Shown in pieces: positions 1-61,747 of a DNA stretch of 64,000 nucleotides. The notes beneath the pieces were generated by a model that worked only from the letters and a program-made list of their open reading frames with translations, did not search any database and was not told the DNA's origin. Position numbers and translations under genes: made by a program. Numbering within the stretch: the stretch's first letter is position 1; each line of letters opens with the position of its first letter. The stretch is taken from positions 248,001 through 312,000 of IMG/VR virus record IMGVR_UViG_3300047994_000374, one strand, 5' to 3'.

Positions 1-2593
1 GACCTGTAGCGCCCGTTAATCCTTGAATGCCAGTTGCTCCTTGAGGTCCAGTTGCACCAGTTAAGCCCGTAATACCTGGAGATCCCTGCGATCCTTGAGG
101 TCCTGTTAAACCTATTACGCCTTGACTACCTGTCGCTCCCTGTGGACCAGTACTTCCAGTTACACCTGGACTTCCTTGATTACCCTGCAATCCAGCTGCG
201 CCAGTAATACCCGGCGAGCCTTGTAAACCTTGTGCGCCGATGGGTCCCATTGCTCCAGTGACGCCAGTAACACCTTGAACTCCAGTCGCTCCTTGAATTC
301 CTGTAACACCTTGGAGTCCAGTTACACCTGGCGAACCTTGTGGTCCATTAGATCCCGTAACTCCAGGTGAGCCTTGAGGTCCAGTAGATCCGATTAAACC
401 AGTTACACCTGGAGATCCCTGAAGTCCTTGTGCTCCACCTGGACCAGTAGCTCCAGTTACTCCCTGTACACCTTGTGATCCTTGCGGTCCTGTAGCTCCT
501 GTTAAACCAGTAATACCTGGGCTTCCCTGTAATCCTTGAGGTCCTGTAGATCCTTGTGAACCAGTACTACCAGTTACACCAGGTGAACCTTGAGGTCCTT
601 GTGCTCCTGTAGAGCCAGTTATACCTTGACTGCCAGTTGAACCTGTAACGCCTTGAAGTCCAGTAACTCCCTGTGGACCAGTTGCTCCTTGAGGTCCGGT
701 CGCTCCAGTTATACCCTGCAATCCTTGTGGACCAGTAGGTCCTGTAACACCCGTAATACCCTGCGGTCCAATTGAACCAGTTGCACCTTGAATTCCTGCG
801 CTTCCTGTTGGTCCCTGTAAACCTGTTGCGCCTTGAGATCCTGTTGAACCTTGTGGTCCAGTTGATCCTGTTACACCTGGTGATCCTTGAAGCCCTTGTG
901 CACCTGCAGGTCCAGTGGCACCTGTGATGCCTTGTAGTCCTGTAGCGCCTTGTGGACCAGTAACTCCTTGTTGACCTTGCGGACCAGTTGATCCAGTTAC
1001 GCCTTGAATTCCAGCAGCACCTTGTTGACCTTGAGATCCTATAGATCCTGTAGCTCCCTGAAGTCCTGTAACTCCTTGAGGTCCAATAGACCCGGTTGAT
1101 CCTTGTGAACCGGTTGCTCCCTGAATTCCAGTAGCTCCTTGAATGCCTGTAGCTCCTTGAGGTCCAGTTGCGCCCTGAATGCCTTGTGGACCAGTTGAAC
1201 CGGTAACTCCTTGAACTCCCGTTGCTCCTTGTAATCCCTGAGGTCCTGTTGGTCCAGTAGTTCCTTGCGCTCCAACAGGCCCTGTAGAACCCGTTACACC
1301 TTGAATACCTTGAACTCCGGTCGCACCTTGTGATCCTGTGCTGCCAACACTTCCTGTCGAACCAATAGCTCCAGTTGAACCTTGTAATCCAGTAGATCCT
1401 TGTGATCCAGTAGCGCCTTGAGGTCCTGTAGGTCCTGTAGCTCCGATTAATCCCGTAGCTCCTTGTGCGCCTGTTGGTCCAGTAACTCCCTGAATACCTT
1501 GAGAACCTGTAGGTCCTGTAGCTCCAGTAGCGCCTTGTATACCTTGTGGACCAGTAGCACCAATGCTACCTGTAACACCAGTAACTCCTTGAATACCCTG
1601 TGGACCAATTGATCCTGTTGGTCCTTGGGCACCAGTATTTCCTTGAGCGCCAGTAGGTCCTTGAGATCCTGTTGGTCCCGTTGAACCTGTTGCGCCTTGT
1701 ATTCCTTGTGGTCCAGTAGATCCTTGAATACCTTGAGCACCAGTTAAGCCTTGTGATCCTGTTGGACCAATAGCTCCTGTTGGACCAGGTGCACCTGCAG
1801 GTCCCGTTGCGCCTTGCGTTCCTGCAGGACCAGTTGGACCTGTAGCACCAGTAGCTCCTTGCAACCCAAATCCCGCTGGACCTGTAGCTCCAGTTACACC
1901 AGGTAAACCTTGTGCGCCAGTTGGTCCTGGAAGACCTGTAGCTCCTTGTTGACCAGTAGCACCAAATCCTGCTGGTCCAGTTGGTCCTGTAGGTCCTGGT
2001 AAACCTGTAGCTCCCTGAATTCCTTGTGGACCTGTAGCTCCTGCTGGTCCGGTAGCTCCAGTAACTCCTGGTGCGCCAGTTGGTCCTGGAGAACCTGTAG
2101 CGCCTTGTGTTCCGCCACCAGCTGGTCCGGTAGCTCCAGTAACACCTGCTGGACCTGTGGTTCCAGGAATTCCTTGAATCCCTTGAATGCCTTGAATGCC
2201 TTGTGTGCCTTGGGGACCGGCTGGTCCTTGTGGTCCCTGAGGTCCTACTGGACCTCCTGCTGGTCCTGTTGGTCCGATTGGTCCTGTTGGGCCAGGAGGT
2301 CCGCCAAAAGGTCCTGTAGCACCTTGTGGACCTGTTGCTCCGGTAACACCAGTAACTCCAGGTGAACCTTGATTACCTTGTGGTCCTGTAAAACCAATTC
2401 CACCAGTAGCTCCCGTTACTCCAGGAATACCTTGTATACCAGCTTGTCCTTGTGGTCCAGGAGATCCTTGTGGTCCCGGATTACCTTGAACTCCCTGTGG
2501 TCCTTGAGGTCCTTGTGGTCCAGTGGCGCCAGTTATTCCACCTCCTCCACCGGATCCTTTTATCTGATCAGGATTTACTTTTGATATAACCAT
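1..2593 (-). CDS. Collagen-like (Gly-X-Y repeat) fibre protein, runs off the left edge of the window (>860 aa)
   Basis: ATG at 2593. Translation [37 protein letters not shown]..., then G-X-T/Q/P triplets with a few interruptions to the window edge. Absent from the ORF track because there is no stop in the window. Confidence 0.9.
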
Positions 2594-2608
2594 GTCAAGT
2601 AATCCTTC

Positions 2609-3211
2609 TTATGAATTATCAACATAGTAGTCAGCAGTGATCACATCGATGGGAGCTGGCGTTGTTGTAGGTGGGTCTGTTAAAATAACTGTATCATAAC
2701 CTGTTCCCGGACCGCCACTTTCTGCAATAAAATAATCGCCTAAATAAAGTTGTTTTACACCGTTAACATATACAATAATCTTATAAGGATCTGCTTGTAT
2801 AAATTTACCTGAAGGAATTGTAAAAACTGTATTCACATCATTTACAGCTCCGACCAATTGAATATCTTCTTCATGAACAACATTCGTTTGCGATGAGCCA
2901 ACTTTCAATCCATTGACAATGCCAGATGCTTTTAAGAAGGCAAGCTGATCATCATTAAATTGTAATAAATCAATATCACTATAAACAATTGTTATTTCTT
3001 TAGCTTTTAATTTATGAAGAATTTCGCCCTTCAATAAAGACGCACGAATGTCGGCTTCGCCAATACCCCTAATTGCCAATAAATCTCTTTCACACCCCAC
3101 AGGAATAGGATACTGAAAAATATTAATTGTTTTAGGAGTTCCCGTAATAATATTCTTAACAATAAAAGAAGTATTAAATTTTTGATAGGGAGCGAAATCA
3201 TTCATGCCCAT
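2609..3211 (-). CDS. Hypothetical virion/fibre-associated protein
   Basis: 200 aa ORF. C-terminal 'VYVNGVKQ..GDY' beta-rich motif is typical of tail and fibre proteins; adjacent to the collagen gene. Confidence 0.6.
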   Translation of the reverse strand: MGMNDFAPYQKFNTSFIVKNIITGTPKTINIFQYPIPVGCERDLLAIRGIGEADIRASLLKGEILHKLKAKEITIVYSDIDLLQFNDDQLAFLKASGIVNGLKVGSSQTNVVHEEDIQLVGAVNDVNTVFTIPSGKFIQADPYKIIVYVNGVKQLYLGDYFIAESGGPGTGYDTVILTDPPTTTPAPIDVITADYYVDNS

Positions 3212-3381
3212 CTAAAACGCTCCTTATTTAATTTGGAATAATTTTTACCTAATAAATCTCTCTGCGCACCAACACGAATAGGATATTGAAAAATATTAAT
3301 GGTCTTTGGCGTACCTGAAATAATATTTTGTACAATGAAAGAAGTATTGAATTTTTGGTACGGTGCGAACTGATCTGTCAT
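3202..3381 (-). pseudogene. Truncated 59-aa duplicate of the N-terminus of the 2609..3211 protein
   Basis: MTDQFAPYQKFNTSFIVQNIISGTPKTINIFQYPIRVGAQRDLL vs MNDFAPYQKFNTSFIVKNIITGTPKTINIFQYPIPVGCERDLL. Confidence 0.7.
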
Positions 3382-4127
3382 TACGAACCCAAATTTATAT
3401 TAATGGTTACCGTTTTTCCATCAGAAGTTTTACCTTGCGTTTGAATTACTTGAGAATCATTTGTTCTTACGGCTTGAACACTCTCTGACACAAGACGAAC
3501 AGGTTCATTTACCACTTCATTATTTTTTACAATTTGTGGTACGATATTAGAAAATGATTCGGATTTATAAATGGCGTTTTTTGACAATAATTCGTCCTTA
3601 CTTAAAATAACTTTTTTGAGGGCTTCTTTTGTTAGATTGGACAATTCATCGTAGCCCAGTCTATACCTTACATATAACAGCTCTTCAATATAGTTTAATC
3701 CACCTTGAGATGGTTGCGATTCCGAAAAGTTGCCATCCCCCTGTTTTATTCGTAATCCCGTATTCAATGTATTTAAAAGAATTCGAGCATTACTATCTAA
3801 CCATTCAAAATCTTTTCCATATTCTGCTTTTATCTCTTCAAGAACGCCATGAAGTTTTAGTAAATTTTTTAAAGTGTCGGCTGTTTTTTCAGATACAAAT
3901 GGCTCAGCGCGGTGATAATGTTGAAGTCCACGGCGAGGGTTAAATGTATCTTCTGAATCAATATGGCGTGTATCAAAAGCATTTTTTACCATGGGCAATG
4001 AATCAACCACGGCAGAACGTAATGCCTTTTTACGCAGCTTTATGGCATCATCTCTTTCAATAATAGAAGAGGTGCCGATTGAAATTAAGCCAGATATTTC
4101 ACATGCATCAGTACGAGAAAACGACAT
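3381..4127 (-). CDS. Hypothetical protein
   Basis: 248 aa ORF on the coding strand. Confidence 0.7.
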   Translation of the reverse strand: MSFSRTDACEISGLISIGTSSIIERDDAIKLRKKALRSAVVDSLPMVKNAFDTRHIDSEDTFNPRRGLQHYHRAEPFVSEKTADTLKNLLKLHGVLEEIKAEYGKDFEWLDSNARILLNTLNTGLRIKQGDGNFSESQPSQGGLNYIEELLYVRYRLGYDELSNLTKEALKKVILSKDELLSKNAIYKSESFSNIVPQIVKNNEVVNEPVRLVSESVQAVRTNDSQVIQTQGKTSDGKTVTININLGS

Positions 4128-4397
4128 ATACTAATACAAAGATATGTGGAGTAATTATCATTTTTAGCTACCATTATGAGAATGTAATAAGCAATCTAAT
4201 TTGAGATTCAGAAAGGGGAAGGCTTGATTGCAGGCGGAGCAGTGGGTTGGTGGATTCAATGCGCGATCTTTTTAAATATGAAAATTGGTTCAAACTTCAT
4301 TTTTCCATTTTGATCTAACCCTGCGCCGTATTTATCATTTTTACTTCCCAAAAATGTGGCGTAAAGTATTGGATTTTTAGATAATTTTAATTTCATA

Positions 4398-4718
4398 TTA
4401 TGCGAAGATCATTAATTTTTTAAGTCTATTTGCCGTAATATCAAATGGCGTATTGTTTGGTAGCTTCATGATGATCCTATTTGTTTTTGCGTCAATTAAT
4501 TCGCAAAAATGAACATCCAATTCTGATGTAAAATCCCAGCTTACATAATATTGTTTTTTATTTAATTTGACAGATTTTGAGGCAATATTGTAGAAAAATA
4601 TTCCTTGCTCATCCTTAAAATAAATATAAAACATCTTACATGGAGTGCATTCGGCAGATTTATTTTCATCGTAGAAGATGTTTTCTTTACAACGGAGACA
4701 TTTTAGATGGATTTTCAT
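4398..4718 (-). CDS. Small zinc-ribbon hypothetical protein
   Basis: CLRC...CTPC motif; ATGA overlap with the upstream gene. Confidence 0.6.
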   Translation of the reverse strand: MKIHLKCLRCKENIFYDENKSAECTPCKMFYIYFKDEQGIFFYNIASKSVKLNKKQYYVSWDFTSELDVHFCELIDAKTNRIIMKLPNNTPFDITANRLKKLMIFA

Positions 4719-6823
4719 TTTAAATTTCTGAACATATAAATTAATTCATATTTTTCGGTACCAGCAGATTTATTTAAATGTGATCTTATTGTTTTTAATT
4801 TAACTTCTTCTTTTATTTCACCGAATCTATCAATTGCCATTTCCAACATTTTAGGATAATTTTTAACATTTAGTCCAAACCATTTATTAGGTTTAAGCGC
4901 TTTTTTAACATTGTCAAGTGTTTTGGACCAATAAATATCGTAAAAATAATTCTCGCCATTATTATAAGCCTGAGTTAAATCATTTGAATAATATTCCTGA
5001 TCAAAATATGGAGGGCTGCTAAAACTAAAATCAATGCTATTTTCTTCTAAATTTACCGTTTCTGATCCTGCTTTAATTAATTTTATTTTTTTTAAACCGA
5101 GTGATTCTGACATAATTTTTAATTCGTCAGTAGTCCATGGATCAGTTCCAATATATTCTCGATTACAACTAGCCGCACCTAACATTCTACCACCCCAGCC
5201 AGCAGAATAGTCATAAACAATATCATTTTCATCACTATACTTCATATACATATATTTAGCAATATCTGGCTTAAACATAGAAATACTAGGAACTAAACGT
5301 GAAGATCTCATTCCTTGAATTAGCATACGAAAAGAAATATTAAAAGTTTCATCATTATTTTCTTTATCCCACCAATCAAAACCAAGCCTATTTTTAATTA
5401 ATTTTTTTAATTTATCATCATCATTAAATAATTGTATCATATTTAATTCATTTTTTTCAGTCGCCTCATAAAATTTATGACAAAAATATTTACAAATATC
5501 TGTCGCCAATGAACTATTATTAAATAATTCATTAGATGATAAATTTGGCTTAAAATTACATAATTTTTTCCAACTGTTATGAATTTTAGAAATATTATCC
5601 GGATAGAGCCAGCCTTGTGATCTAAAATATTGAAACAAAGGCTCTATTAAATTTTCACGTGACTCATAATCTAATGTTTTAACATATTTAGCAGTAATTG
5701 GCTGTCCATTAATAGAGACTATTTTATCATATAAATAAATATCATCATGTTTAATTTTAGTTATTGTTCTTTGATGTAAGTTATATTTATTAGATAATTC
5801 ATTTACTGATGATCCATTAGAAATGGCGTCAATAATTTCTTTTTTATTTTCTTCTGAAACTTTATATTCATTTTTTTTAAATGAACGATTATTTTGTTGC
5901 TCTATTAATGATAAATATTTTTCATATTTTCTGTCTAATCTAATTATTTCGGGAGAATCTTTATATAACCAATCCGCTAATTTAAGTACCTTTTCATTAC
6001 CATTACTTTCTAACTCATAAGTGTTATTGTTAGTTTTAGAAATATTTCTTAAATTAACTATTATTTTTAATTTATCTAAAATAATTTGTTGTATAGATTC
6101 TCCACACTCTTTGGTTGTTGCAATAGACCATTTCCATTCATTTGTTTCACGTTTACAAATAGAGCCGTCACCATCAAACAGCCCTCTAATAAAATGTACA
6201 TATAATTTTTCATCAAGCCATTCTGGATATTCTATAATAAAACTTTTAGCTTGGGGGCACCCTTTATCATTCAAAGTTTTACATAAGTGCTTGCTATACA
6301 TTTTAAGTGTAAAATATTCATGTCCCTCTTTATTTTTAGTGTAAGTTATTTTATTTGGTGATAAACCCATAAAATTAGCAAGTTTTTGTAAGTGTTTTAA
6401 ATCTCTGGTTTGTAAAGAAACAGATACTGTATTGGTTTTATTACAATTATAGGCATCAGCATAAAAAAATCCTAACCAGTAAGCCTTTTCGGATGAATTA
6501 ATAATATCAAAAATATTTTTATTAAATTCGGTAAATCTATGAGATTCACTTTTATCTCTTAATAAGTTTTTATTTTCTACCCATTTTTGTACTCTACGCT
6601 TATCAATGGAGTATTTTATTCCTAAAGACTTGGCAGATACGCCCTGTTGATATAAATCGCAAATTTTATCAATTTTATTTTCGGAAAAATCTTCTTTTAA
6701 GATCGCCCATCTATTTAAATTAATAATTTCTTTAATGTTTTTAATATCTAAATTTAAAATTTTGGCGATTCTTTTAATTGCAAATCCGTCTTGAACCATT
6801 TTTTTAATTATTTCAATATTCAT
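4715..6823 (-). CDS. LAGLIDADG homing endonuclease fused to an amino-DNA methyltransferase
   Basis: HTH N-terminus; KAYWLGFFYADA and FIRGLFDGDGS LAGLIDADG motifs; C-terminal SAM-binding DYSAGWGGRMLGA and catalytic SPPYF. Confidence 0.85.
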   Translation of the reverse strand: MNIEIIKKMVQDGFAIKRIAKILNLDIKNIKEIINLNRWAILKEDFSENKIDKICDLYQQGVSAKSLGIKYSIDKRRVQKWVENKNLLRDKSESHRFTEFNKNIFDIINSSEKAYWLGFFYADAYNCNKTNTVSVSLQTRDLKHLQKLANFMGLSPNKITYTKNKEGHEYFTLKMYSKHLCKTLNDKGCPQAKSFIIEYPEWLDEKLYVHFIRGLFDGDGSICKRETNEWKWSIATTKECGESIQQIILDKLKIIVNLRNISKTNNNTYELESNGNEKVLKLADWLYKDSPEIIRLDRKYEKYLSLIEQQNNRSFKKNEYKVSEENKKEIIDAISNGSSVNELSNKYNLHQRTITKIKHDDIYLYDKIVSINGQPITAKYVKTLDYESRENLIEPLFQYFRSQGWLYPDNISKIHNSWKKLCNFKPNLSSNELFNNSSLATDICKYFCHKFYEATEKNELNMIQLFNDDDKLKKLIKNRLGFDWWDKENNDETFNISFRMLIQGMRSSRLVPSISMFKPDIAKYMYMKYSDENDIVYDYSAGWGGRMLGAASCNREYIGTDPWTTDELKIMSESLGLKKIKLIKAGSETVNLEENSIDFSFSSPPYFDQEYYSNDLTQAYNNGENYFYDIYWSKTLDNVKKALKPNKWFGLNVKNYPKMLEMAIDRFGEIKEEVKLKTIRSHLNKSAGTEKYELIYMFRNLK

Positions 6824-17271: not shown

Positions 17272-18642
17272 TTAGGGTAATTTTGCCTTTTTCTTTAACC
17301 TTATAATAGTGTCTCTAGAAACTCCGTAAGCGTTTCCAATCTCTTTTAATGTCCTATTGTCATTTAATATAGATGTTATTTGTTCATTTGTAAAATCTTT
17401 ATAGTTAGGATTTTTTATAGCAATGCCGGCTTCTTTTTTAATTCTTGTAATCACTCGGCGCGTGGAATTAAAAGTCTTTGCAATTTCGATGAGGCTTCTT
17501 TTATCTGCAATAATAGCTTTAACCTGATCTTCGTTAAATTCAACTTTATTTCTAGGTTTTTTAAATTTTACATATGTTCCCATTTTTGTCTTTAATCTTA
17601 CTATTGTCTGTTGCGAGCAATTATAAATTTTAGCTATTTGCTCATATGGACGAGGATCGTATGCTATATCTATTTTTTGTTGATCGGTAAAATTAATAAC
17701 ATTTGGTTTTTTTGTTATGTACCCTGCGGCTTTTTTGACGCGCACAATAACTGAATCAATAACGCCAAGATCGCGAGCAATTGTACTTAGAGGACGTTTA
17801 TCAGCTATAATGACATCTATTTGATCTTGTGTAAATTTCCTCTTTCCTTTATAATTAGGTTTTCGTGATATTAGGTCTCCATAGTTCAATAATCTTAACC
17901 CATGCTTATTACAATATCGAATGCCATCAATTATTTTATAGGGCTGATAGGCGCCACTGACATCACAATTTGGAGCATTGCATTTTAATTCGCCAGTAGC
18001 TTCTTTTTCCTGTAATTTTTCTGCCCAAACTTCTTTTAAGGATATGACTCTCTTTGCAATAGTTTCTTCTGATTGGACTTTCCCTGTAAGAGCCTCTGAT
18101 TGATGCTTTCTCATTTCATCTGTCCAAATTACTGGGTTAGCCAAACGAGCCCTGCTAAGCGTTTCTGATTGCTCTGGTGTGCGCTTTTTTCCTAAACCAG
18201 GGTGACCTTGAGTTGCAATTTGATTGAACATAGCTTGACGAGCTTTTTCATTTAACTCTTCTCTTTTATCTATAGGGATTGAAGCGTGCCATGCGCGCAT
18301 AGCCTGCCTCCATTCTTCGGATTTTGGAGCATTCATTCCACCGTGTGTTGCATTATACCCTTTTCCGTGCTGTACATAACTGCTATACTGTTTAACTAAT
18401 TCTGTTTCAAGTTCATTTGCATTATCTTGTCCCTTACAAGACGCAATAATTTTGAATTCAAAATTATGATTACCATGTTTTTTTATAGCAAAATGAAATG
18501 GTACTTTTGGATTAGCTGCGTCTCTACAGTGCGCTCTCCACCGCGTATTTGGATTTACTGTTTGTCCAATATATACTTTTTTATTTATAACACATGTAAT
18601 GCAATAAAGATAAATAATCCGAGATTCAATTTCAATTGTCAT
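17272..18642 (-). CDS. GIY-YIG homing endonuclease with NUMOD3-like and tandem HTH repeats
   Basis: IYLYCIT...KVYIGQT...RW..H...ELE...GYN; four C-terminal 'FT.DQ...I..D.R....IA' repeats. Confidence 0.88.
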   Translation of the reverse strand: MTIEIESRIIYLYCITCVINKKVYIGQTVNPNTRWRAHCRDAANPKVPFHFAIKKHGNHNFEFKIIASCKGQDNANELETELVKQYSSYVQHGKGYNATHGGMNAPKSEEWRQAMRAWHASIPIDKREELNEKARQAMFNQIATQGHPGLGKKRTPEQSETLSRARLANPVIWTDEMRKHQSEALTGKVQSEETIAKRVISLKEVWAEKLQEKEATGELKCNAPNCDVSGAYQPYKIIDGIRYCNKHGLRLLNYGDLISRKPNYKGKRKFTQDQIDVIIADKRPLSTIARDLGVIDSVIVRVKKAAGYITKKPNVINFTDQQKIDIAYDPRPYEQIAKIYNCSQQTIVRLKTKMGTYVKFKKPRNKVEFNEDQVKAIIADKRSLIEIAKTFNSTRRVITRIKKEAGIAIKNPNYKDFTNEQITSILNDNRTLKEIGNAYGVSRDTIIRLKKKAKLP

Positions 18643-32070: not shown

Positions 32071-35031
32071 TTACAACCTTTTTTCAACATACCCGCCCAA
32101 AACTAATGGCTTGTCGCGGTTGGTGATACTTCCTTGAGCATGCGGATTCATGTTTGTAAAAGAATTTGTAACTAAAAATCGATAAGCTATATAAGCATTG
32201 AGAAGCGCCATCATTCCGTCGTTTGGAGTGCTGCCTTTAACATAATGAATGGTCGGATCGCCACCATTTCGGGATATAGATGGCTTAATTTCCATACTGC
32301 AACAATGTTCAATTAACCATCCAACCTTATCATAATCTCCGTAAGGAAAACGAATCATACCCTTTTTCATTTGCTCATATAATTCTGCAATATAAAAATC
32401 TCTTTCAAATATCATTTCTTTAGGAAACGAGTCCTGGGTGTATTTAATATGTCCTGGAGCGTTAATTTTATTATGAGCGCGAGAAACTAAATAACGATCT
32501 CCATACATATTATGAAGTGTCACTGAAAAATCGTTTGAATATCCGATATCTCCTACTGCCAATTGAACATTGTATTGTCGCATTAATTGATCAATGATGC
32601 CTTTTTTGGATTCAGGATCATTCTTTTTAAATTTATGCGCATATTCAATGGAAAGTAAATTCGGACCCTTTGCTAATAAAATAACTGCAGTAGAATAAGA
32701 TTGCCCCGTCGTCTTTACTTTTTCTGGATTGGCAAGCTGTTCTAAATCGTTGCGCAGACCGTAGTCTAATCCCATAACTACAATTTGCTGTTGCTCTGTG
32801 TTGCTATCTATTTTTGCGCGATATTTTCTACCTACATCACCACAATATTCTCTAATTTCATCCGTAGTAATTGGACTTGTATCTCCAGCGAAAAATTCTC
32901 CAAGAACTTCATTTTGAAATACACGTTCGGTGTTAATTGGATGGACGCCTGGTTTTTCAGCAAGAATTGCTTCTTTACTGAACATTGGCATATATAAAGA
33001 GTTAATATGAAATCCAACCATTTTACAATCGGGGTCTTTATCATCTTTAAGCGCGATCCATTTGCCTCGTTCTGCGGCGGCGCGCTTATCTTGTTCATGT
33101 CCACATTTTGTACATTTAACTATAAATGTATGAAGCCATATTTTTTCCCAGTCATCAGAACCTGGAGTATACAGTGGAAAAAAATCTTTACAATTTTCAC
33201 ATCCCAAAAAATAATATTGTTGGGAAGAAGTTTGCCACATTTTATGGAACGATGATCCTTGCTTACGAGGCGTACCGAACATAACTTGTAATCCTTGTGT
33301 CGGTTTGCCATATTTAGCTGTAATTAAAATTTTCTGTGAGTTACCAATAGCAACATCAGTTGTTCTTTGTACTTCATCGAAAATCATTACATCTGCCGTA
33401 TTATGAGTTGGAATACATTGTTTTGTTATCAAATATAGGCGCGATGAGCTATCAACAGTTATACAGCGCATTGGAATGGATGGAATTGGTTTAACATCCA
33501 CAATAAATCTTTGATGTGCTTTTTTTGAAATATTTTTAATATTTGCTAGTTTTCGCTTCATTCTAAAAACTGGAAGCGTAGTCATAAACCGGACCCGATA
33601 TTTATCTTTATACTGAACGTCGTATCTCCAACTTTCTCTTTTATAAATTTTTGCTTTTATGCCTAGGCTTAAAACCAACTCTAATACTTGTCTTGCTAAA
33701 TTCTCTCTCACCTGAACAAACTCTACATTTCCTAATTTATCTACGTGCCCATCAGTATCAAGAAGTCCTTGTAATAGCGCCAACCGTTGATCAAATGACC
33801 CCCTCATATAAATGTCTGGAATGTGTTTATTATACCATTGCCCCTTTTTATTATGAGTATTTTTTAGTTGCTTTAATAATGTAAGCTTATTTGTCAATCC
33901 ATCTATTCTATACGCGGCGGATCTTGATGGAACTTTACTAAAAGAAGTTATTCGTGGCACCAAGGAAGAAGGAATAACATGATGAGAATAATTTGAAAAA
34001 ATTTCTGGATCGGCACTTTCAATATGTCCTGCCTGACACCCGTCACCAAGCCACAATCCTAATAAATAAGGATCTAATGGTAAATCTTTTTCTGGGTAAT
34101 TTAAAGGCTTACAATTTGGAATAGAATGGTTGCTTTCTTTCCCATATCTTAAAGTTTCGAAAATTTGTTTCGTATTTTTAATTTTTGGAATTGGCATATT
34201 TGGAGTTAGACCAACTTTAAAACTATTTGTATTTAATCGATCGCGTTTCGTATGTGTTAGCCAAAGGTGCTCTGCACAAGCATCTACTGTCGTATCATCA
34301 TCAAATGTTATTCTATACGCCTCGGGAGAAAAATTGATTGGATGTAATTTCGTAACTCGACAAATGTTACCATTTTCGTCGAACAATTCATCATTTTCTT
34401 TTAGATCGCGAAGTTTAATAAAACCCGATGGCGTTGGGATATCAATCTCCAATGAAAGTTGACGCCCCATGATGCGATCGCCGTCTAAACCGCAGGACTC
34501 AACCCATAAGTGATTACCGTTTTTAAATTGTTTGAAATGAAGTGAATTACCTTGGTCTGTTCCATCATCAAGCATCAGTTGCATATATGATTTTGCTTTA
34601 CCAGATTTATCTGGCTTTGAGCCTTCGGGAACAATAGAACCATTTATCATTTGAGATAATTTTGTTTTTGAATAAGCAGCTGCAAGCTCACCGAAAGGAA
34701 AAATATGCATTACTCGAATAGGTGGCTTTCCATTAACACCAAACAAACCACTTCCCATAAAATACATTTCAAGAGCCGACGCCATGGTAGTATTTCCCAC
34801 CTGGCGCGATTTTACAACAATCATAGGTTTCGCGTTGGGTTCTAATGCTTTGACACCGAAATACCTATACATATCTCCATAGGGTTTATATCCATTGCCG
34901 TGAATTCTGAATGGAGAACCATCTAATGTGAGATATTTTTCTACGAAATAAATAGGATCAATATTTAATAGAGAATTCTTTAATTGTTCAAATGTTTCAT
35001 TTTGTTCTTGTTTATCCGACTTGCTTTTCAT
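32071..35031 (-). CDS. terL: Terminase large subunit (GpA-like) with intein
   Basis: Walker A KSRQVGNT, Walker B VMIFDE, motif III GTP, CxxC pairs, nuclease GLDYG...ND. Confidence 0.9.
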   Translation of the reverse strand: MKSKSDKQEQNETFEQLKNSLLNIDPIYFVEKYLTLDGSPFRIHGNGYKPYGDMYRYFGVKALEPNAKPMIVVKSRQVGNTTMASALEMYFMGSGLFGVNGKPPIRVMHIFPFGELAAAYSKTKLSQMINGSIVPEGSKPDKSGKAKSYMQLMLDDGTDQGNSLHFKQFKNGNHLWVESCGLDGDRIMGRQLSLEIDIPTPSGFIKLRDLKENDELFDENGNICRVTKLHPINFSPEAYRITFDDDTTVDACAEHLWLTHTKRDRLNTNSFKVGLTPNMPIPKIKNTKQIFETLRYGKESNHSIPNCKPLNYPEKDLPLDPYLLGLWLGDGCQAGHIESADPEIFSNYSHHVIPSSLVPRITSFSKVPSRSAAYRIDGLTNKLTLLKQLKNTHNKKGQWYNKHIPDIYMRGSFDQRLALLQGLLDTDGHVDKLGNVEFVQVRENLARQVLELVLSLGIKAKIYKRESWRYDVQYKDKYRVRFMTTLPVFRMKRKLANIKNISKKAHQRFIVDVKPIPSIPMRCITVDSSSRLYLITKQCIPTHNTADVMIFDEVQRTTDVAIGNSQKILITAKYGKPTQGLQVMFGTPRKQGSSFHKMWQTSSQQYYFLGCENCKDFFPLYTPGSDDWEKIWLHTFIVKCTKCGHEQDKRAAAERGKWIALKDDKDPDCKMVGFHINSLYMPMFSKEAILAEKPGVHPINTERVFQNEVLGEFFAGDTSPITTDEIREYCGDVGRKYRAKIDSNTEQQQIVVMGLDYGLRNDLEQLANPEKVKTTGQSYSTAVILLAKGPNLLSIEYAHKFKKNDPESKKGIIDQLMRQYNVQLAVGDIGYSNDFSVTLHNMYGDRYLVSRAHNKINAPGHIKYTQDSFPKEMIFERDFYIAELYEQMKKGMIRFPYGDYDKVGWLIEHCCSMEIKPSISRNGGDPTIHYVKGSTPNDGMMALLNAYIAYRFLVTNSFTNMNPHAQGSITNRDKPLVLGGYVEKRL
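33400..34461 (-). mobile_element. 354-aa intein with LAGLIDADG domain, class-3 type, starting with Gln
   Basis: GR|QLSLEIDIPTPSG...ACAEHLW...LLGLWLGDG...LLQGLLDTDG...MRCITVD...IPTHN|T. Confidence 0.88.
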
Positions 35032-53988: not shown

Positions 53989-55242
53989 CTATTCATCATT
54001 TTCATCGTCTAATTCAATTAAACCTTCATTATACAGAATGTCTTCCAAATGATCTTGAATGTCTTTGGGTTCATTGAATTTTATCTCTTCGACAGGCTCT
54101 GATTTATTTTTAAGGGCTTTCATTGAAATCTTTTTGGATTTCAAATCGTTTGGCATAGATGGAGGCATGGCGAGATTAAATAAATCATAAAGAATAATTC
54201 CCATATTATCTTCATAGTTATTTGTGGTTCCAGAAAAATGAATACCGAGTCCAGCTTCAAATTTTGCTTTTTTATTGATTGCTTTCATATTCTGTTGAAG
54301 TTTCTCCCACTGTTCTGGAAAAATGGTAACGGAACATTGATCGCCTGTTTTATCTTCAATAGTTGCCTTAACCATCGTCTTACCGTAATTTTTCGAACCT
54401 TCTTTTTTAATTCGGAACTCAAAAAAATCCTTTACAATACCCTTCATAGATTTAAAAGTCGTTTTCTCTTTAGCCTTTTTAATCTGTTGAACAAGCGTAT
54501 GGTCATCTTCGAAAAATGCGCCATAAGCCTTGGACGGTTTACAAATAAATCCTTCTCCCAAATAATGATGTTCAAGCGCATATAGTTCTGGTTTCGTCCA
54601 TTCAATATCGGTCGGCCAAGGATACTCAAACTTTTCTTTTGCAGGATCATGTTTTTTTAACCAAGATTGGAGTTTCTTGCGATAGTCTGAACAGTAAAGA
54701 AACATGGCTTTTCTAGTAATCGTTTTTGTTGCGAAAATATCAAGTGCCCCTGATGCTGCAAGGGCTTGAATAGAATTGGCTCTCACCGCCTTTGAACTAA
54801 TACGATGCATGAAATCAAAGAAGCTAGTAAAAGGACGCTTTGCTAAAATATCCAAAATAGCATCGTCGCCGACAAATTTAATTGCATCAAGTCCTGTGAT
54901 TAATTTATCTCCCTCAACAATATAGGTAAGTTGAGCTTTGTTTAATTCGGGCGGAACAATTTTTACTTTATGTTGACGGATTTCTTTTTTGATTTTGTCG
55001 ATATTTGCTTTGGCATCAGGTGTGGCTGATTTTACTTCTGCCATAAGATTTGCGAGAAGAAACTCAATTGGGAAGTGGGCTTTTAGATAGGCTGTTTTAT
55101 ATCCAGTCATTGAATAAAGAATACTATGTGAATTGGATGTTAGCATGCCGTTAGCCAGATAAAATTGATGATCTGGATGATCTACTTCAAGGTCGTAGGT
55201 TTGAAAACTTCCAATCTCTTTAACTGATTTAATGTTACTCAT
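53989..55242 (-). CDS. dnaE: DNA polymerase III alpha C-terminal half, preceded by a 37-aa C-intein (55132..55242)
   Basis: MSNIKSVKEIG..QTYDLEV...HQFYLANGMLTSN|SHS..Y...Y.TAYLKAHFP.EF; HhH and OB-fold motifs. Confidence 0.92.
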   Translation of the reverse strand: MSNIKSVKEIGSFQTYDLEVDHPDHQFYLANGMLTSNSHSILYSMTGYKTAYLKAHFPIEFLLANLMAEVKSATPDAKANIDKIKKEIRQHKVKIVPPELNKAQLTYIVEGDKLITGLDAIKFVGDDAILDILAKRPFTSFFDFMHRISSKAVRANSIQALAASGALDIFATKTITRKAMFLYCSDYRKKLQSWLKKHDPAKEKFEYPWPTDIEWTKPELYALEHHYLGEGFICKPSKAYGAFFEDDHTLVQQIKKAKEKTTFKSMKGIVKDFFEFRIKKEGSKNYGKTMVKATIEDKTGDQCSVTIFPEQWEKLQQNMKAINKKAKFEAGLGIHFSGTTNNYEDNMGIILYDLFNLAMPPSMPNDLKSKKISMKALKNKSEPVEEIKFNEPKDIQDHLEDILYNEGLIELDDENDE

Positions 55243-56410
55243 ATGCTTTACCTATTTTATAAATCCCTGGTATTTTGTTATTTAATATTTCTAATAATTG
55301 AGCGATACACTCTGGTTTAAAATATGATTTTTCTATTTTATTTTTATCTACGTATTGATCATCTGATATTCTAATTAAAGTCCAATTCTTTTTTATAATT
55401 AAATCTTCGAGCTGGCGATCTTTAATTATAACCACTTTCAGCACGTCTTCTCCAAAAATCGGTTTAAAATGAGTTGGACCATCAAACTCTATATAAATTC
55501 TTTTTTTAACATCCATCATATCTATTTGTGTTTTAGATGTAAAAATTTTAGCTTTTATAAATTTATTTCTTTTAAATTTAAATCCTTTAAGTTCAAGCAC
55601 GAATTCGAACAATTTCTTTTCTGGTTTGCTCTGCCAACTATTTAACATTGGCTTTGTGCATTTATTATAAAAATCATCTGGATAACCATCTCGCCAAACT
55701 TGAAGTTGTTTAGTTCGGCTTTCAATAATATCTGGGCGAGCGGAGGTTATTTTGGCTGTATCAGAGGATTTTTGACGCATAACATCACTTTGATTGACTT
55801 TGGTCATGACGCCAGCTCTACGGGTTCTATCTTCTGGATTTGCCATAATTGCTGCACTTACTGCCTTGCTCATTTTTTCACAATATTCTGTTAAATCTTC
55901 GCCGTTTTCCTTCGCCCTATTAATCCAGTTGCCAGTAATTTTATTAGCTTCTGAGTGTGTTTTTGAAGATTTATTAGAAATAATTTTCCCATGATTTTCC
56001 ATATATTCTTTTTTGCTTAAATTGTGCACTAATTTTATATGCCCGGCGAGGCGTTTGGCGTGAACATTGCAAATTTTACAAACAACATAATCTTCATCTT
56101 CTATAAGATTAGCATAGTATAAATTGCACTTACTTTCACATTTTTTGCGATTATCTAATACCAAATATTCCGATGCACAAAATTTACATTTGAATTTTTC
56201 ACGATCTTTATAATACGAACTGCCGCATCCAAATCGACACTCAAAATCTTTTAACTTTAATATTTCCGTAAGCGATTGTGATGTATTGCACCCACACATA
56301 AATTTAAAGTTAACTTTTGTCTTACTTCCTTTAAACTTTTCTAATAATGTTAGATTATTTCTATATTTTTCAGGTATTCTTTCTATATATTCTTTTAACG
56401 ATTTCGACAT
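55235..56410 (-). CDS. Free-standing Vsr/DUF559-like homing endonuclease between the dnaE halves
   Basis: C..C...H...H zinc finger; SKPE...ID...IEFDGPTH...DR...WTLIRI. Confidence 0.8.
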   Translation of the reverse strand: MSKSLKEYIERIPEKYRNNLTLLEKFKGSKTKVNFKFMCGCNTSQSLTEILKLKDFECRFGCGSSYYKDREKFKCKFCASEYLVLDNRKKCESKCNLYYANLIEDEDYVVCKICNVHAKRLAGHIKLVHNLSKKEYMENHGKIISNKSSKTHSEANKITGNWINRAKENGEDLTEYCEKMSKAVSAAIMANPEDRTRRAGVMTKVNQSDVMRQKSSDTAKITSARPDIIESRTKQLQVWRDGYPDDFYNKCTKPMLNSWQSKPEKKLFEFVLELKGFKFKRNKFIKAKIFTSKTQIDMMDVKKRIYIEFDGPTHFKPIFGEDVLKVVIIKDRQLEDLIIKKNWTLIRISDDQYVDKNKIEKSYFKPECIAQLLEILNNKIPGIYKIGKAYE

Positions 56411-56414
56411 TTCA

Positions 56415-59108
56415 TTATCCTATAATAATAGATAAATTTAAATCTATTATTTTATGAAGTGGCAGCATTTCATTAGTCTCTTTAACGCGAAATTTATGAT
56501 CCATCGTGCACTTTACTTTTTCGCCCGTTGTCAATTCTACTTCAACTAATGGTAAGGTTCCGTGATCATGTTTATTTAAAATTTCAACAAAAATGTCTTT
56601 TTTCATTTTTTCGTCTCTTGATCTAACAAATTCACCAGCCACTACATTTTCTATGGTTTTTTGTTGAAGGAAAATACCTTCACTATTATATATATCGACC
56701 ATTTCTAAAAAGTGCACTGATTTGTTGAACCCATACCCACCAAAATTTTCAATAACTTCCGTCCATATACGTTGGGCAATCATTTCTTGGACGCCATTTT
56801 TTACGCAATCAGCAATAAATTCTTCGCGGAGAGCTTGAATTTTTTTGGGATTTTTACCTTTATCCTTCGTCATCTTTCTTAAACGGTCAGCATCATTTAA
56901 ACTCCAACACGCCACATCTTGTGCCAAATAGAATAAAGATTCTTCATAAAGACCGAATCCGAATGTATTATTGAATGCTCGACCTAATTTTGGATGTAAT
57001 AAAGAGAAGGCTCGTTTTCCATCTTTTGTTAAAATGAAGTCCTTTCTCATGTCTCTGGCAGATGGGCGAGATAAAGAGTTAATGTAACTAATATCATTAA
57101 TTGATTTTGGCTTAATCTGTCGGCAAAGATCAATGGTGCCACCAGATGTTCCTAACTGAAAAACTCCATAAGTGTCGCCCGATGAGATTAAATCATAAGT
57201 TGCCTGATCATAGGCATCAAAATCAATCACTGGAACTTCTTTGCCTGCCTGTCTAATAAGTTCTTCTGTTTTACCAATTAAATCAAGCGTAGATAGCCCA
57301 AGAATATCAATCTTAACCATTCCATTTTCTTCGGACTTATCTTTATCATATTCAATGGCAAGTGTTCCATCTTTATCTTTTCTTAATGGAACCAATCCAG
57401 TCATAGGGCGTGAAGATATAATAATTCCGCCTGCATGCGTTGACCACGCCCTCATTTGTCCAGACAGTTTTTTATATTTAATGAATTCGGGATATCTTTT
57501 GCAATACTCTCCAAATAATGGGATTTTAGCCAATGCATCATCTATGGATTTAATTTCAGCGGGAATACAGTCAGCAACTTCATTTCCAATCCGAACAGCA
57601 TCTTCTTTAGAGCCGCCTAACTCGCATGCTCTAGCGATATCTTTAACATAAACCTTTGGAGTAATTGTATTTACATTGGAGACGTGAGCTACATTGTTTT
57701 CGCCATATTTGTTAATAAGATAGTTTTGAACTCTATCTCTGCCTGATGGAGCAATGTCAGAATCGACGTCGGGGAATGCAATCTTATCTTTATTTAAAAA
57801 ACGAGCAAAAATCAAATTATGTTGAATAGGATCGGCAGTATGAATATCTATTAGGTAAGCTAATAAAGATCCTCCTACAGATCCACGACCTTCATTTATT
57901 GGAATGCCTTGATTTCGTGCCCAATCAAGGAAATCGGCAACAATCAACATGTAGCTGGAAAAATCTCGAAACTCAATAACATCAAGCTCTTCAATTAATC
58001 TTGCACGATATTCCTCTTCTTTACCGACAGGAACTTTATTTTTAAACCCCAACTCACACTTATAGCGAAGGAATGCTTTATCTTCGCTTAATATTTTAAC
58101 TTCATTATTCTGCTCACTCAACCAAGCTAAAAATTCTTGATAATTCAATTCATCTTTTACTGGAAATATTGGAAGCTCTTTGCCTGATGGATTTGAAAAT
58201 TTGGGATCAATCCACTCCGGCTTTTCACACAAGTCAGAAAAATAAATTGAATTATCACAAAATTCTTGTGCTTGCGCCTCTCCGTAATTTCGAACAAAGA
58301 AACTCTTAACTTCTTCACCTGACTTCAAATAAAAGTCTTCAACTGGATACCTTAAACGGAAATTTGAATAGATAGTTTGATGACTTCCGATTGCCAAAAG
58401 GGCATCGTGTGTTTTAGCCTCGTCTTTGTGAAGATAATGAGTATTACAAGCTACTACAACTCGAATACCGTGCTTCTTACCTAAATTCGTAAGCTGTCTA
58501 TTTAAGAATACCTGATCAATTTCATCGTTATAAATATTCGATCCACGCTTCATATTATTGGGTTGGATTTCAATGCCCAAATTGTCGGCGAAAATATCTT
58601 TTAATCGCAGTAATGTTTTTTCAGCTTCATCTGGCTTTCTATTCATGAGAAGCTGGCTGATGATGCCATTGCCACATGCTGTTAAACAAATCAATCCTTC
58701 AGCATGTTCTTCTAACAACTTCCAGTCAATAATTGGATAAACGCGCTTGCCAAGAAATGATCCTTGATCGAAGCCTTTTTTATTAATGGTGAGAAGATTT
58801 CGATACCCTATTGCATTTTTAGCAATGAGAATGATATGCTTTAATTTATTTTGCTTTTTTGCATTGGATTCTTGCGCTTTTTTAGTAGCATCATCTAAGA
58901 AGTAACACTCCATACCGACGATAAGCTTGATACCTATTTCCTGTGATGCCTTCCAAGCCTCCCAGAAAGAACCTCCGCTTCCATGGTCCGTTATGGCGAC
59001 CGCTGGCATGCCTATCTCTTTGGCGCGCTTTAAAAGGTCTTTGGGAGAGATAATCGAATCTAAAATTGAATAATGCGTTTGATTGTGAAGCGATACGAAA
59101 TTGGTCAT
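56415..59108 (-). CDS. dnaE: DNA polymerase III alpha N-terminal half, followed by an N-intein (56418..56720)
   Basis: PHP domain H.QT.YSILD/TDHG; GRGSVGG; PDVDSD; ...GYGFNK|SVHFLEMV...CTMDHKF. Confidence 0.93.
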   Translation of the reverse strand: MTNFVSLHNQTHYSILDSIISPKDLLKRAKEIGMPAVAITDHGSGGSFWEAWKASQEIGIKLIVGMECYFLDDATKKAQESNAKKQNKLKHIILIAKNAIGYRNLLTINKKGFDQGSFLGKRVYPIIDWKLLEEHAEGLICLTACGNGIISQLLMNRKPDEAEKTLLRLKDIFADNLGIEIQPNNMKRGSNIYNDEIDQVFLNRQLTNLGKKHGIRVVVACNTHYLHKDEAKTHDALLAIGSHQTIYSNFRLRYPVEDFYLKSGEEVKSFFVRNYGEAQAQEFCDNSIYFSDLCEKPEWIDPKFSNPSGKELPIFPVKDELNYQEFLAWLSEQNNEVKILSEDKAFLRYKCELGFKNKVPVGKEEEYRARLIEELDVIEFRDFSSYMLIVADFLDWARNQGIPINEGRGSVGGSLLAYLIDIHTADPIQHNLIFARFLNKDKIAFPDVDSDIAPSGRDRVQNYLINKYGENNVAHVSNVNTITPKVYVKDIARACELGGSKEDAVRIGNEVADCIPAEIKSIDDALAKIPLFGEYCKRYPEFIKYKKLSGQMRAWSTHAGGIIISSRPMTGLVPLRKDKDGTLAIEYDKDKSEENGMVKIDILGLSTLDLIGKTEELIRQAGKEVPVIDFDAYDQATYDLISSGDTYGVFQLGTSGGTIDLCRQIKPKSINDISYINSLSRPSARDMRKDFILTKDGKRAFSLLHPKLGRAFNNTFGFGLYEESLFYLAQDVACWSLNDADRLRKMTKDKGKNPKKIQALREEFIADCVKNGVQEMIAQRIWTEVIENFGGYGFNKSVHFLEMVDIYNSEGIFLQQKTIENVVAGEFVRSRDEKMKKDIFVEILNKHDHGTLPLVEVELTTGEKVKCTMDHKFRVKETNEMLPLHKIIDLNLSIIIG

Positions 59109-59222: not shown

Positions 59223-59885
59223 TTACTTATCGAAAAGCAAGGTCTTTAATTGAAGCTCTTTTAGATTATCATCAATTTCATAGAATTTATTGATGACTTT
59301 AAATTGTTCTTTCCAAAATTCTCTATTTTTGGATTTTTTAATAATTAATCGCTGTAATTCTTCAAAGGATAATCTTTTATGTTTAAATAAGGCGTGGGCT
59401 ACAATTTGAACGGCATCCCAATGTTCTTGCAATTCACTTAAAACTTCTCTAATTATTCTTTGCTTATAATTGTATCGTTTTCTTCCTGGAGGACATAACT
59501 GGTACTTTATAATCAAATTTGTGGCGGATTTAAGATCATCCGATGCTCCATTAAGAACCATTGGAAACCTATCTGATCCAGAACTATATTTAAAATAACA
59601 CTTTTCAGCTGCGAGACCGGCATAACTTAATCCAATTTCTGCATGAACAAGTTTATCCAAAAGATCGGGGTCTTCAACCTTATTTAGGTCATTGGCGATA
59701 TAATAAGTAAATCCGTCAATGCGTTTTGACTTTTTAGCCTGAAACACTTGGACGGACTCAACTTTCATATATCTAAGTAAAGCGTAAATAACATGTCCGC
59801 TTTCGTGCCAACTTGTTAAAATCGTTTCCTGAGTTTGAGAGATTTTCTTTCGAACTTCCTCAATCGATTTTGACCGTTTTGGCAT
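59223..59885 (-). CDS. FtsH/M41-like zinc peptidase domain protein (no AAA domain)
   Basis: WHESGH; AGLAAE; GASDDL..A. Confidence 0.8.
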   Translation of the reverse strand: MPKRSKSIEEVRKKISQTQETILTSWHESGHVIYALLRYMKVESVQVFQAKKSKRIDGFTYYIANDLNKVEDPDLLDKLVHAEIGLSYAGLAAEKCYFKYSSGSDRFPMVLNGASDDLKSATNLIIKYQLCPPGRKRYNYKQRIIREVLSELQEHWDAVQIVAHALFKHKRLSFEELQRLIIKKSKNREFWKEQFKVINKFYEIDDNLKELQLKTLLFDK

Positions 59886-60499: not shown

Positions 60500-61747
60500 T
60501 TAATCAATAATTTTAATTGTTTTTGTTACGAAATCCATTGCAAATTCATCTCTAATACGAGCAAACAAAATCTGTAAATACCCTGAATCTTGCATTTGCT
60601 TAATGATTTCATCCATGGGTTGTTGCACTTGTGTTTGCGCTAAATTCTGCTTAATCACTTCAAATACTTCTTGATCACTTAATTGTGCTTCTGGCTCATC
60701 TTCCCGAATCTTATCAAGGATCAGAGATAGTTTAACATTTTTCTCTGCAATGTCAAGGAAGCGAACCTTATCTTCATCTGACATTGTAGCCCAATCCATT
60801 TTGCTTTTTTGTGCTAAATATTGCGCTTCTGACAGTGACATCCAATTAGGAACATCAACTGTATTATCAGCGACTAAACGATTAGCCACCGCTTCGTTAA
60901 TGGCCGCTTTCGCACTGTTCGCGGTTCGGGCAGAGGCGGTTGAAGCAACAAGGGCACGAAGTTCTTCGAATGTGCTCTTGCCCATGTGTTGCGCAAGTTC
61001 ATCATTGAGCGGGCATGGTGTTGATTTTGCGCCAGTTACAAGCTTTACTTTGAAATGAACGGTTTTTCCAGCAATAGAAGGAAGACCACCTGCAGGAACA
61101 ACAATATCAAACTCACGTTCCTCGTCAGTTTTCATTCCAAGCAAATTGTCATCAAATCCAACGACTTGATTTTTACCAACCGTAAGCATTTCTCCAGTTG
61201 CGCAAAGACTATCAACTTTCTCTCCATCAACTGATCCTTCAAAGTCAATTAAAAGATTATCTCCGGTTTGAACGAAATCGTCATTTGAAAATGGAGTAAC
61301 ATCTCCAAACTTGACGCGAAGTTCTTGGAGCATTTTTTCTGCCATTTCTTCGGATGACATTGGGTCAGCTGGTTTTGGAACTTCCATATTCTTAAAATCG
61401 GCAACTTCAAAATCTGGCTTGGTCAGCATTTCGAATTCACATGAAAACTTTCCACTTTCCATTTTAAGTGATTTGAATTGTGGGGTACCGTGAGCACGAA
61501 GCTTCTTTTCAAAGATAGTTTCATGGTAAGCCGTTTCTGCAAGGGCTCGTTTGGTAGCTTCATCGATTTGAGTTCGATAATGCATATTAATTGCTTCAAG
61601 AGGCGCTTTACCATCACGAAACCCCTTAACTGGAGCTTTCTTAAAGGTATTTAAAACCTCAGCCCGCTTTGCTTGAATTTCAGTAGAATCTGCTTCATAA
61701 TGAACTTTTAACTTACACTTTTCGATTTCTTGAACTTGAATTTCCAT
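60500..61747 (-). CDS. tig: Trigger factor
   Basis: Ribosome-binding signature GFRDGKAP; FKBP-like domain GD...IDFEG.VDG...GF...L.GMK. Confidence 0.93.
   Translation of the reverse strand: MEIQVQEIEKCKLKVHYEADSTEIQAKRAEVLNTFKKAPVKGFRDGKAPLEAINMHYRTQIDEATKRALAETAYHETIFEKKLRAHGTPQFKSLKMESGKFSCEFEMLTKPDFEVADFKNMEVPKPADPMSSEEMAEKMLQELRVKFGDVTPFSNDDFVQTGDNLLIDFEGSVDGEKVDSLCATGEMLTVGKNQVVGFDDNLLGMKTDEEREFDIVVPAGGLPSIAGKTVHFKVKLVTGAKSTPCPLNDELAQHMGKSTFEELRALVASTASARTANSAKAAINEAVANRLVADNTVDVPNWMSLSEAQYLAQKSKMDWATMSDEDKVRFLDIAEKNVKLSLILDKIREDEPEAQLSDQEVFEVIKQNLAQTQVQQPMDEIIKQMQDSGYLQILFARIRDEFAMDFVTKTIKIID

Follow-up and report, generated by a model that had tools for sequence, protein, structure and literature searches.

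How does a phage make a full-length DnaE polymerase when the only dnaE gene of its genome is split in two, with an endonuclease gene lodged between the pieces? The question is raised by a stretch of 64,000 nucleotides (positions 248,001 to 312,000 of the IMG/VR virus record IMGVR_UViG_3300047994_000374), which we call the window, whose coordinates are used below unless a relative is named, and which forms part of a single contig of 394,192 bp with 36% G+C. Between window positions 53989 and 59108, three abutting genes on the minus strand encode the N-terminal part of DnaE, a free-standing homing endonuclease and the C-terminal part of DnaE, and the two DnaE pieces carry the N- and C-terminal halves (IntN and IntC) of a split intein at their facing ends. 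We consider it very likely that this is a fractured gene, in which a mobile unit comprising the split intein and an endonuclease of the EDxHD family sits at the site GFNK/SHS (here and below, the slash marks a splice junction), and in which the halves splice in trans to yield full-length DnaE. About 40 other phage contigs share the split intein, and the locus is a widespread new instance of a known fractured-gene arrangement, predicted from its sequence to splice. The parts of the locus are as follows.

56415-59108, minus strand: dnaE-N gene, 897 amino acids, with extein residues 1-796 ending in NFGGYGFNK, then IntN (residues 797-897).
56721-59108, minus strand: dnaE N-extein, residues 1-796, with PHP, DNA polymerase III (Pol III) alpha NTPase and finger domains (Pfam PF02811, PF07733 and PF17657).
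56418-56720, minus strand: IntN, 101 amino acids, N-gene residues 797-897, starting with SVHFLEM; the stop codon is at 56415-56417.
55235-56410, minus strand: free-standing homing endonuclease gene, 391 amino acids, between the dnaE halves.
53989-55242, minus strand: dnaE-C gene, 417 amino acids, with IntC as residues 1-37, then the extein.
55132-55242, minus strand: IntC, 37 amino acids, C-gene residues 1-37 (MSNIKSVKEIGSFQTYDLEVDHPDHQFYLANGMLTSN), with blocks F and G, ending in ANGMLTSN with the terminal Asn37 and a penultimate Ser.
53989-55131, minus strand: dnaE C-extein, residues 38-417, starting with SHSILYS (Ser+1), with a helix-hairpin-helix domain (Pfam HHH_6) and a C-terminal region; the stop codon is at 53989-53991.

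The genes are tightly packed. The ATG of the endonuclease lies 4 nt past the stop codon of the N gene, with AGGA upstream, and the last 8 nt of the endonuclease gene overlap the dnaE-C gene at its ATG. With a stop codon after IntN and an ATG of its own for IntC, the two intein halves are on separate polypeptides. This is the architecture of phage fractured genes that the first-pass annotation of this DNA, made by a model from the letters alone, had recognized: an N gene with IntN, an endonuclease and a C gene with IntC, on one strand and in one locus. The 394-kb genome contains one copy of dnaE; no second one was found in it, and no paralogues of the endonuclease or of the intein halves were found elsewhere in the genome. 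Promoter and terminator scans gave nothing exceeding shuffled expectation, and no internal signals are proposed. The same annotation had named splicing at the RNA level as an outcome that would speak against a split intein, and a group I or group II intron carrying the endonuclease open reading frame (ORF) deserves mention, as EDxHD endonucleases occur in group I introns too, for example I-Bth0305I in a recA intron (PMC3239194). We give this explanation next to no credence. The endonuclease ORF fills the gap entirely, being preceded by 4 nt and overlapping the next gene by 8 nt, so that no non-coding space is left for a ribozyme core; no match to a group I intron or to any other Rfam family was found in the window or in positions 54900-57000 at E ≤ 1; and the flanks are recognizable intein halves, in frame with the exteins.

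The point at which the polymerase is interrupted can be defined to the residue. In the alignment to the PHROG 405 (DNA polymerase) model, N-gene residues 1-797 cover positions 41-794 and C-gene residues 37-353 cover positions 793-1082, so the two pieces abut. A tblastn search of the N gene against phage DnaE matched 1440 records, and among the 25 matches listed all but one end at residue 797; Pol III alpha of Taq and E. coli can likewise be aligned as far as YGFNKS. A scan of IMG/VR with the N-extein returned 31 loci with 48-73% identity, in 30 of which (63-73% identity) dnaE is uninterrupted, and 29 intact relatives show GYGFN(M/V/Q/I/L/K/Y)SH(S/A) at the predicted junction. Similarity of these intact relatives to the N gene stops at residue 796-797 and similarity to the C gene begins at residue 38, while in the thirtieth, L079, the N and C matches abut. 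From these comparisons, the unit of intein and endonuclease appears to be inserted exactly between the codons of Lys796 and Ser in the conserved GFNK/SHS. Since the native extein linkers of the cyanobacterial Ssp and Npu inteins are KFAEY / CFNKS (bioRxiv 10.1101/196105), the site is displaced from the cyanobacterial one by four residues in the downstream direction, as had been proposed at first reading. It is also used by others: contiguous inteins with Cys1 and an HN/SH end are present at FNK/S in DnaE of Rhodococcus phage NiceHouse and in dnaE of metagenome-assembled genomes (MAGs) of Chloroflexia and Bacteroidia, some of them on contigs of 1.15 and 2.4 Mb, where the intein contains an insert with LAGLIDADG-like motifs. 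A Gemmatimonadota MAG (L081) has the same HN/SH C-terminal junction, its N-terminal junction lying beyond the contig. Because contiguous inteins occupy it in the MAGs and in NiceHouse, FNK/S is a recurrent intein home and not a peculiarity of this phage.

The two halves bear the marks of a splicing domain. An IntN of 101 amino acids that follows GFNK, starts with SVHFLEM and contains TMDH as block B, and an IntC of 37 amino acids ending in TSN ahead of SHS, are both in the sequence where the first-pass annotation had placed them, as is Ser at positions 1 and +1. Apart from Ser1, which is Ser797 of the N gene and directly follows the N-extein, IntN has an SRDE motif, K50-H51-D52-H53-G54, Cys71 and the block B residues Thr72 to His75 (T72-M-D-H75) within GEKVKCTMDHKF; IntC supplies the terminal Asn followed by Ser+1 (YDLEVDHPDHQFYLANGMLTSN/SHS). 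Compared with the PDB as a single sequence, IntN has matches to DnaE split inteins only (E about 3e-3), and a profile of 31 IntN of the family matches Npu and Ssp DnaE inteins with E from 4e-13 to 1e-8 and gp41-1 with 3e-5. IntC aligns over its full length with the IntC of Npu DnaE (4lx3_B), which ends in ASN. Cross-reaction with Npu cannot be assumed absent in an intein first put forward as a candidate orthogonal tool, because IntN is most similar to the IntN of Npu and Ssp DnaE. A penultimate His in block G is common, though not universal, among inteins; here its place is taken by Ser36, as in every member of the family. The absence of this residue had been offered as a distinguishing feature of the window intein. 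The absence is real, but it distinguishes nothing, given that Npu ends in ASN and the whole family in SN, nor does it disqualify the intein, because the efficient Npu DnaE intein lacks the His as well.

Variation within the family points the same way. Of the split alleles, 35 have Ser as residue 1, 4 have Cys and 2 have Thr, and none has a non-nucleophile; replacement of this residue solely by other nucleophiles is the pattern predicted for a working catalytic residue. The two Thr1 members are L009 (5651-5962, GFNA/TLALFE) and L034 (N-gene tail near 5133, GFNK/TCHFEE); Thr1 is very unusual for inteins, and a sequencing error is possible in these cases since each is a single contig. His75 is invariant in the family, while 2 of 31 members have Ser in place of Thr72; no member departs from the terminal Asn or from Ser+1, the intein ending in SN and the extein starting with Ser. 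IntC is 37 amino acids long in every member, and IntN is 35-66% identical to the window copy, a conservation similar to that of the polymerase itself. Cys71 (56506-56508), the residue immediately preceding the block B Thr, is shared by 31 of 31 aligned IntN, while Npu has Ala there; it probably packs in the protein core, and because of it the intein can be called cysteine-free at its catalytic positions only. The invariance of Cys71 brought a class 3 mechanism, which is defined by a Cys in block F, into consideration. It was rejected, as every member has a nucleophile at residue 1 and Cys71 (Ala in Npu) belongs to block B, adjacent to Thr72, and not to block F.

A model of the complex between residues 787-897 of the N gene and residues 1-47 of the C gene supports association of IntN and IntC. 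Its ipSAE is 0.88, compared with 0.01 for the best of three controls; this mark is attained by 51 of 78 solved complexes and by 2 of 108 mismatched pairs. Agreement in contacts between the three runs is at least 92%, the predicted local distance difference test score (pLDDT) of the partner is at least 78, and the interface includes both splice junctions. Such a model speaks for association only and not for chemistry, and the halves might no longer splice at all, acting instead as domains through which the two polymerase pieces dock noncovalently and with high affinity. Aeh1 NrdA is a reported example of a fragmented phage enzyme held together without ligation (PMC3045599), and an intein with Ser1 and without a penultimate His could be of low chemical activity. 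We nevertheless regard docking as improbable. All the chemical residues are conserved across about 40 alleles, and no residue other than Ser, Thr or Cys occurs at position 1, as expected for catalysis and not for docking. The site lies within the conserved motif GFNKSHS, so that an enzyme with about 140 residues added there would probably be impaired, and the contiguous inteins of L026 (described below) and NiceHouse must splice to free this motif.

The third component, the endonuclease, is best seen through its modelled fold. Pfam gives only weak matches to DUF559 and ROS_MUCR, NCBIfam gives none, and a profile built from its homologues matches no nuclease in the PDB by sequence, including Vsr and I-Bth0305I (3r3p). 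Two regions can be delimited.

55988-56098, minus strand: Ros/MucR-type C2H2 zinc finger, residues 105-141, with a weak Pfam ROS_MUCR match and, for a profile of 31 homologues against Ros (2jsp), an E of 3.3e-6.
55241-55636, minus strand: Vsr-like (EDxHD) nuclease domain, residues 259-390, in an AlphaFold2 (AF2) model with a pLDDT of 88.2.

Further Cys-rich motifs are located upstream of the zinc finger. In a fold comparison with VIA-align, residues 259-390 superimpose on Vsr (1cw0) with a Z-score of 12.5, a root-mean-square deviation (rmsd) of 2.9 and 118 aligned residues, and on the catalytic domain of I-Bth0305I (3r3p) with a Z-score of 10.7, an rmsd of 2.7 and 96 aligned residues, both scores exceeding those of unrelated PD-(D/E)xK folds. 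E308, D310, H314 and D331 are, among other residues, invariant in 31 homologues, and the order in which they occur suggests that they are equivalent to residues of Vsr or I-Bth0305I. On the strength of the model, the protein is assigned to the EDxHD (Vsr-like) family as a predicted homing enzyme. A word-index protein search recovered 91 homologues, several of them labelled by their source as Vsr endonuclease. Against GenBank phages, neither tblastn with the endonuclease nor a DNA search with the locus gave a match, and a single-protein pattern scan for the endonuclease in IMG/VR gave none. The closest homologues, with 46-52% identity, are found in the same place between dnaE halves, adjoining trigger factor and recA; L003, L004 and about 24 IMG/VR loci have the gene at this position.

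The relatives of the locus document how variable the unit is. A pattern scan with the C-gene alignment identified 44 IMG/VR loci, 39 of which are dnaE loci with the following arrangements.

About 25 of 39 loci: IntN, EDxHD endonuclease and IntC (endonuclease frameshifted in L028).
6 loci (L006, L009, L025, L027, L031, L037): halves adjacent, 35-117 nt apart, without endonuclease.
2 loci (L008, L022): a 51-amino-acid remnant of the endonuclease.
2 loci (L015, positions 4016-6001; L020, positions 3951-6008): an unrelated ORF of 661-685 amino acids with no Pfam match at the position of the endonuclease.
2 loci (L013, L014): IntN fused in frame to about 165 extra amino acids (266 amino acids after GFNK).
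1 locus (L026): a contiguous intein.
1 locus (L019): C-gene half only, the contig ending before the N gene.

The contiguous intein of L026 (about positions 5560-6111, LKEQASIVLRRNESDGLEHRFASITSFFEIGEF) belongs to the sister of the split allele L024 on the extein tree described below; the two share a downstream flank about 80% identical in DNA, and in L024 the endonuclease gene divides the intein at the corresponding point. The pair looks like the states before and after an endonuclease invasion, or after and before its deletion. An additional contiguous intein is present in the N half of dnaE in L004 and L005 (positions 2013-6017) and also in L007, L010, L016 and L029, near window residue 410; in L004 it shows Intein_splicing and faint LAGLIDADG matches, and the window gene is without it. 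Closely related C-terminal blocks (QTYDLEVD...LANGMIVSN/SS) also end contiguous inteins in other phage proteins (L045-L048), and a related block ending in THN/SQRY belongs to a contiguous intein in L049, whose host protein is probably ThyX.

The same survey bears on the possibility that dnaE is simply broken and non-functional, with replication carried out by the polymerase of the host or by another one. Mobile-element insertions can inactivate genes, and the locus has been read from DNA only. Yet both halves are full-length open frames in which all DnaE domains are present, the genome has no second dnaE, and the split arrangement persists down to about 27% N-gene identity with the window, including in alleles that have lost the endonuclease and retain both intein halves intact. 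We therefore consider a dead gene highly improbable, and trans-splicing of the two halves remains the reading that we favour.

That the unit moves is indicated by its distribution. In a maximum-likelihood tree of extein residues 420-796 (58 rows after removal of exact duplicates), intact and interrupted alleles interleave; at least 10 changes between presence and absence are needed, of which at least 6 are forced by branches with a Shimodaira-Hasegawa-like approximate likelihood ratio test (SH-aLRT) support of at least 95. L012, which is split and has the endonuclease, and the intact L066 are sisters with 100% support, and their DNA differs by a block of 1365 bp that extends from the Ser1 codon to Asn37.

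Taken together, these data suggest the following course of events. The three abutting or overlapping genes would probably be co-transcribed and translationally coupled, and the DnaE-N-IntN and IntC-DnaE-C proteins would associate via the intein halves, in line with the complex model. Splicing is expected to follow the class 1 pathway with oxygen nucleophiles, that is an N-O acyl shift at Ser1, attack by Ser+1, cyclization of Asn37 and an O-N shift. The product, to judge by the conserved residues and the intact alleles, would be a full-length DnaE with GFNKSHS restored. The endonuclease, in turn, would cut the intein-less dnaE of co-infecting relatives, and repair by recombination would spread the unit, as its family membership and the patchy distribution of the element suggest.

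Several points weigh against this account. The complex model may owe its score to memory of solved DnaE split inteins. Ser1 inteins are frequently slow, and the penultimate His is absent, though the efficient Npu intein does without it too. The locus is known only from DNA contigs of moss and soil metagenomes, the moss metagenomes containing near-identical DNA and the soil metagenome a diverged relative. Relatives have lost or degraded the endonuclease (the six loci without it, the remnant in L022 and the frameshift in L028), and the window enzyme could itself be inactive despite its intact catalytic residues. Finally, the tree was built from a sample drawn with two biased queries (for the split and the intact sets) and its root is unknown, and co-conversion of flanks during homing can distort an extein tree.

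Within the intein, one further position deserves attention. Position 53 of IntN, the H of DHG (56560-56562), is His in every member with Ser1 or Thr1, while seven Cys1 inteins at the site (L023, L038, NiceHouse and four MAGs) have Asn and Npu has Arg; the only Cys1 alleles with His53 are L006 and L018, which are placed among Ser1 relatives. The pattern raises the idea that His53 might act as a helper for oxygen nucleophiles in particular. It resembles the oxyester-specific His proposed elsewhere (PMC10189870), but the surrounding motif is not the same and only a few events underlie the pattern. As for the NX-motif, a His after Lys or Arg, K50-H51 of the window fits it, but position 50 is variable in the relatives and Npu, with Cys1, also has His there, whereas H53 co-varies with the oxygen nucleophile but is preceded by Asp, Tyr or Asn. 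In its boldest form, the family would be a natural series of Ser, Thr and Cys nucleophiles with a His/Asn switch at position 53, natural Thr1 inteins included, which reveals an oxyester helper His in an Npu-like scaffold; no relative of the cyanobacterial split DnaE intein would be closer, and the family might even be its phage source; it would also provide a mesophilic Npu-type split intein without catalytic cysteines. We hold this extended proposal to be rather doubtful.

The surroundings of the locus are those of a phage. Genes of the window, almost all on the minus strand, include those for a tail fibre, a portal, a large terminase, homing endonucleases and a trigger-factor homologue, and the genome is that of a jumbo phage. 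Just upstream of dnaE, positions 59223-59885 (minus strand) encode a 220-amino-acid protein with an HExxH motif (HESGH), and positions 60500-61747 (minus strand) encode the trigger-factor homologue, relatives of which match Pfam Trigger_N and Trigger_C, one of them with a DnaJ gene nearby; the order of trigger factor, HExxH protein and dnaE is kept in relatives. The phage has a second intein, in the large terminase (986 amino acids, 32071-35031, minus strand): it is contiguous, contains a LAGLIDADG domain (Pfam PF14528, E 5e-13, residues 414-474) and ends in CIPTHN/T, the matches to the terminase ATPase restarting at about residue 545. Further mobile-type nucleases are a GIY-YIG-type homing endonuclease matching phrog_314 and phrog_5123 (17272-18642, minus strand) and a protein of 702 amino acids with endonuclease and methyltransferase matches (4715-6823, minus strand). 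The first 2 kb of the window have 52% G+C, compared with about 35% elsewhere, and positions 1-2593 (minus strand) encode a tail-fibre protein with collagen-like repeats.

The locus and its relatives display most stages of the proposed life cycle of a fractured gene in one gene and at one site: the empty site, the contiguous mini-intein, the split form with endonuclease, the decay of the endonuclease and the split form without it. With short metagenomic reads, series of this kind have been difficult to put together. Few split inteins have Ser at both catalytic positions, and those described in PMC10189870 and PMC12707363 all belong to PolB-type polymerases; we found no description of a Ser1 DnaE split intein in the open-access literature. 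The window split intein may serve as a tool for protein ligation: it is an Npu-like intein of DnaE, its habitat is mesophilic, and together with its dozens of natural variants, some of them with Cys1 or Thr1, it makes a reasonable candidate set for that purpose. The understanding of the intein mechanism is unchanged by our findings.

How, then, does the arrangement relate to known systems? The naturally split cysteine-less inteins Neq Pol, Aes123 PolB1, PolB16 OarG and LCGC14 PolB2 (PMC10189870, PMC12707363) share with it Ser1 and Ser+1, for which oxyester chemistry is expected, and most of them are likewise of phage or metagenome origin; they reside, however, in PolB-type polymerases, whereas the window intein resides in DnaE, is Npu-like and has the invariant non-catalytic Cys71. 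With the cyanobacterial Ssp and Npu split DnaE inteins it has in common the host protein and the split point (IntN of about 101-102 and IntC of 36-37 amino acids), and the IntN family profile has its best PDB matches among them, Npu also having the ASN end without a penultimate His. The insertion sites differ (Y/CFNK there and GFNK/S in the window), as do the nucleophiles (Cys1 and Cys+1 as opposed to Ser1 and Ser+1), and the cyanobacterial halves are encoded at distant loci in a cell, while those of the window are adjacent, with an endonuclease between them, in a phage. The contiguous inteins at FNK/S in NiceHouse and in the Chloroflexia and Bacteroidia MAGs have the same insertion point and homologous N- and C-terminal splicing blocks, but they are a mini-intein in the former and have a LAGLIDADG-like insert in the latter, with Cys1, a penultimate His (HN/SH) and Asn at the position of H53.

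The endonuclease resembles I-Bth0305I and the EDxHD family (Taylor et al. 2011, PMC3239194) in having a C-terminal nuclease domain of the Vsr fold with invariant E, D, H and D, a DNA-binding region N-terminal to it, and a gene located inside a gene of DNA metabolism. In I-Bth0305I, however, NUMOD and helix-turn-helix (HTH) motifs are found where the window protein has a Ros/MucR-type C2H2 zinc finger, Cys-rich motifs and a helical domain; the former is encoded in a group I intron and the latter between intein halves, and there is no match to 3r3p at the sequence level. The EDxHD family was tied to fractured genes by Dassa et al. 2009 (PMC2677866) and Taylor et al. 2011 (PMC3239194).

The closest parallel is provided by the fractured genes described by Dassa et al. 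2009 (PMC2677866), namely gp41-1, gp41-8, NrdJ-1 and IMPDH-1 and the loci DnaE-1, DnaE-2 and DnaE-3, the last three having insertion sites different from the cyanobacterial one, and DnaE-2 being accompanied by a Vsr-like endonuclease. Fractured DnaE loci with Vsr-like endonucleases have therefore been known since 2009, and the window family, compared with them by description only, may include DnaE-1, DnaE-2 or DnaE-3, most likely DnaE-2. Both sets have an IntN gene, a free-standing endonuclease and an IntC gene in one locus of phage-like, environmental origin, the lengths of the window halves (101 and 37 amino acids) are within the 88-105 and 33-54 residues reported, and the endonuclease of DnaE-2 is Vsr-like as well. 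In contrast, the characterized members of that set have Cys1, whereas the window intein has Ser1 and Ser+1 and is found in a complete genome of 394 kb, and it can be set beside about 40 allelic relatives and many alleles whose site is empty.

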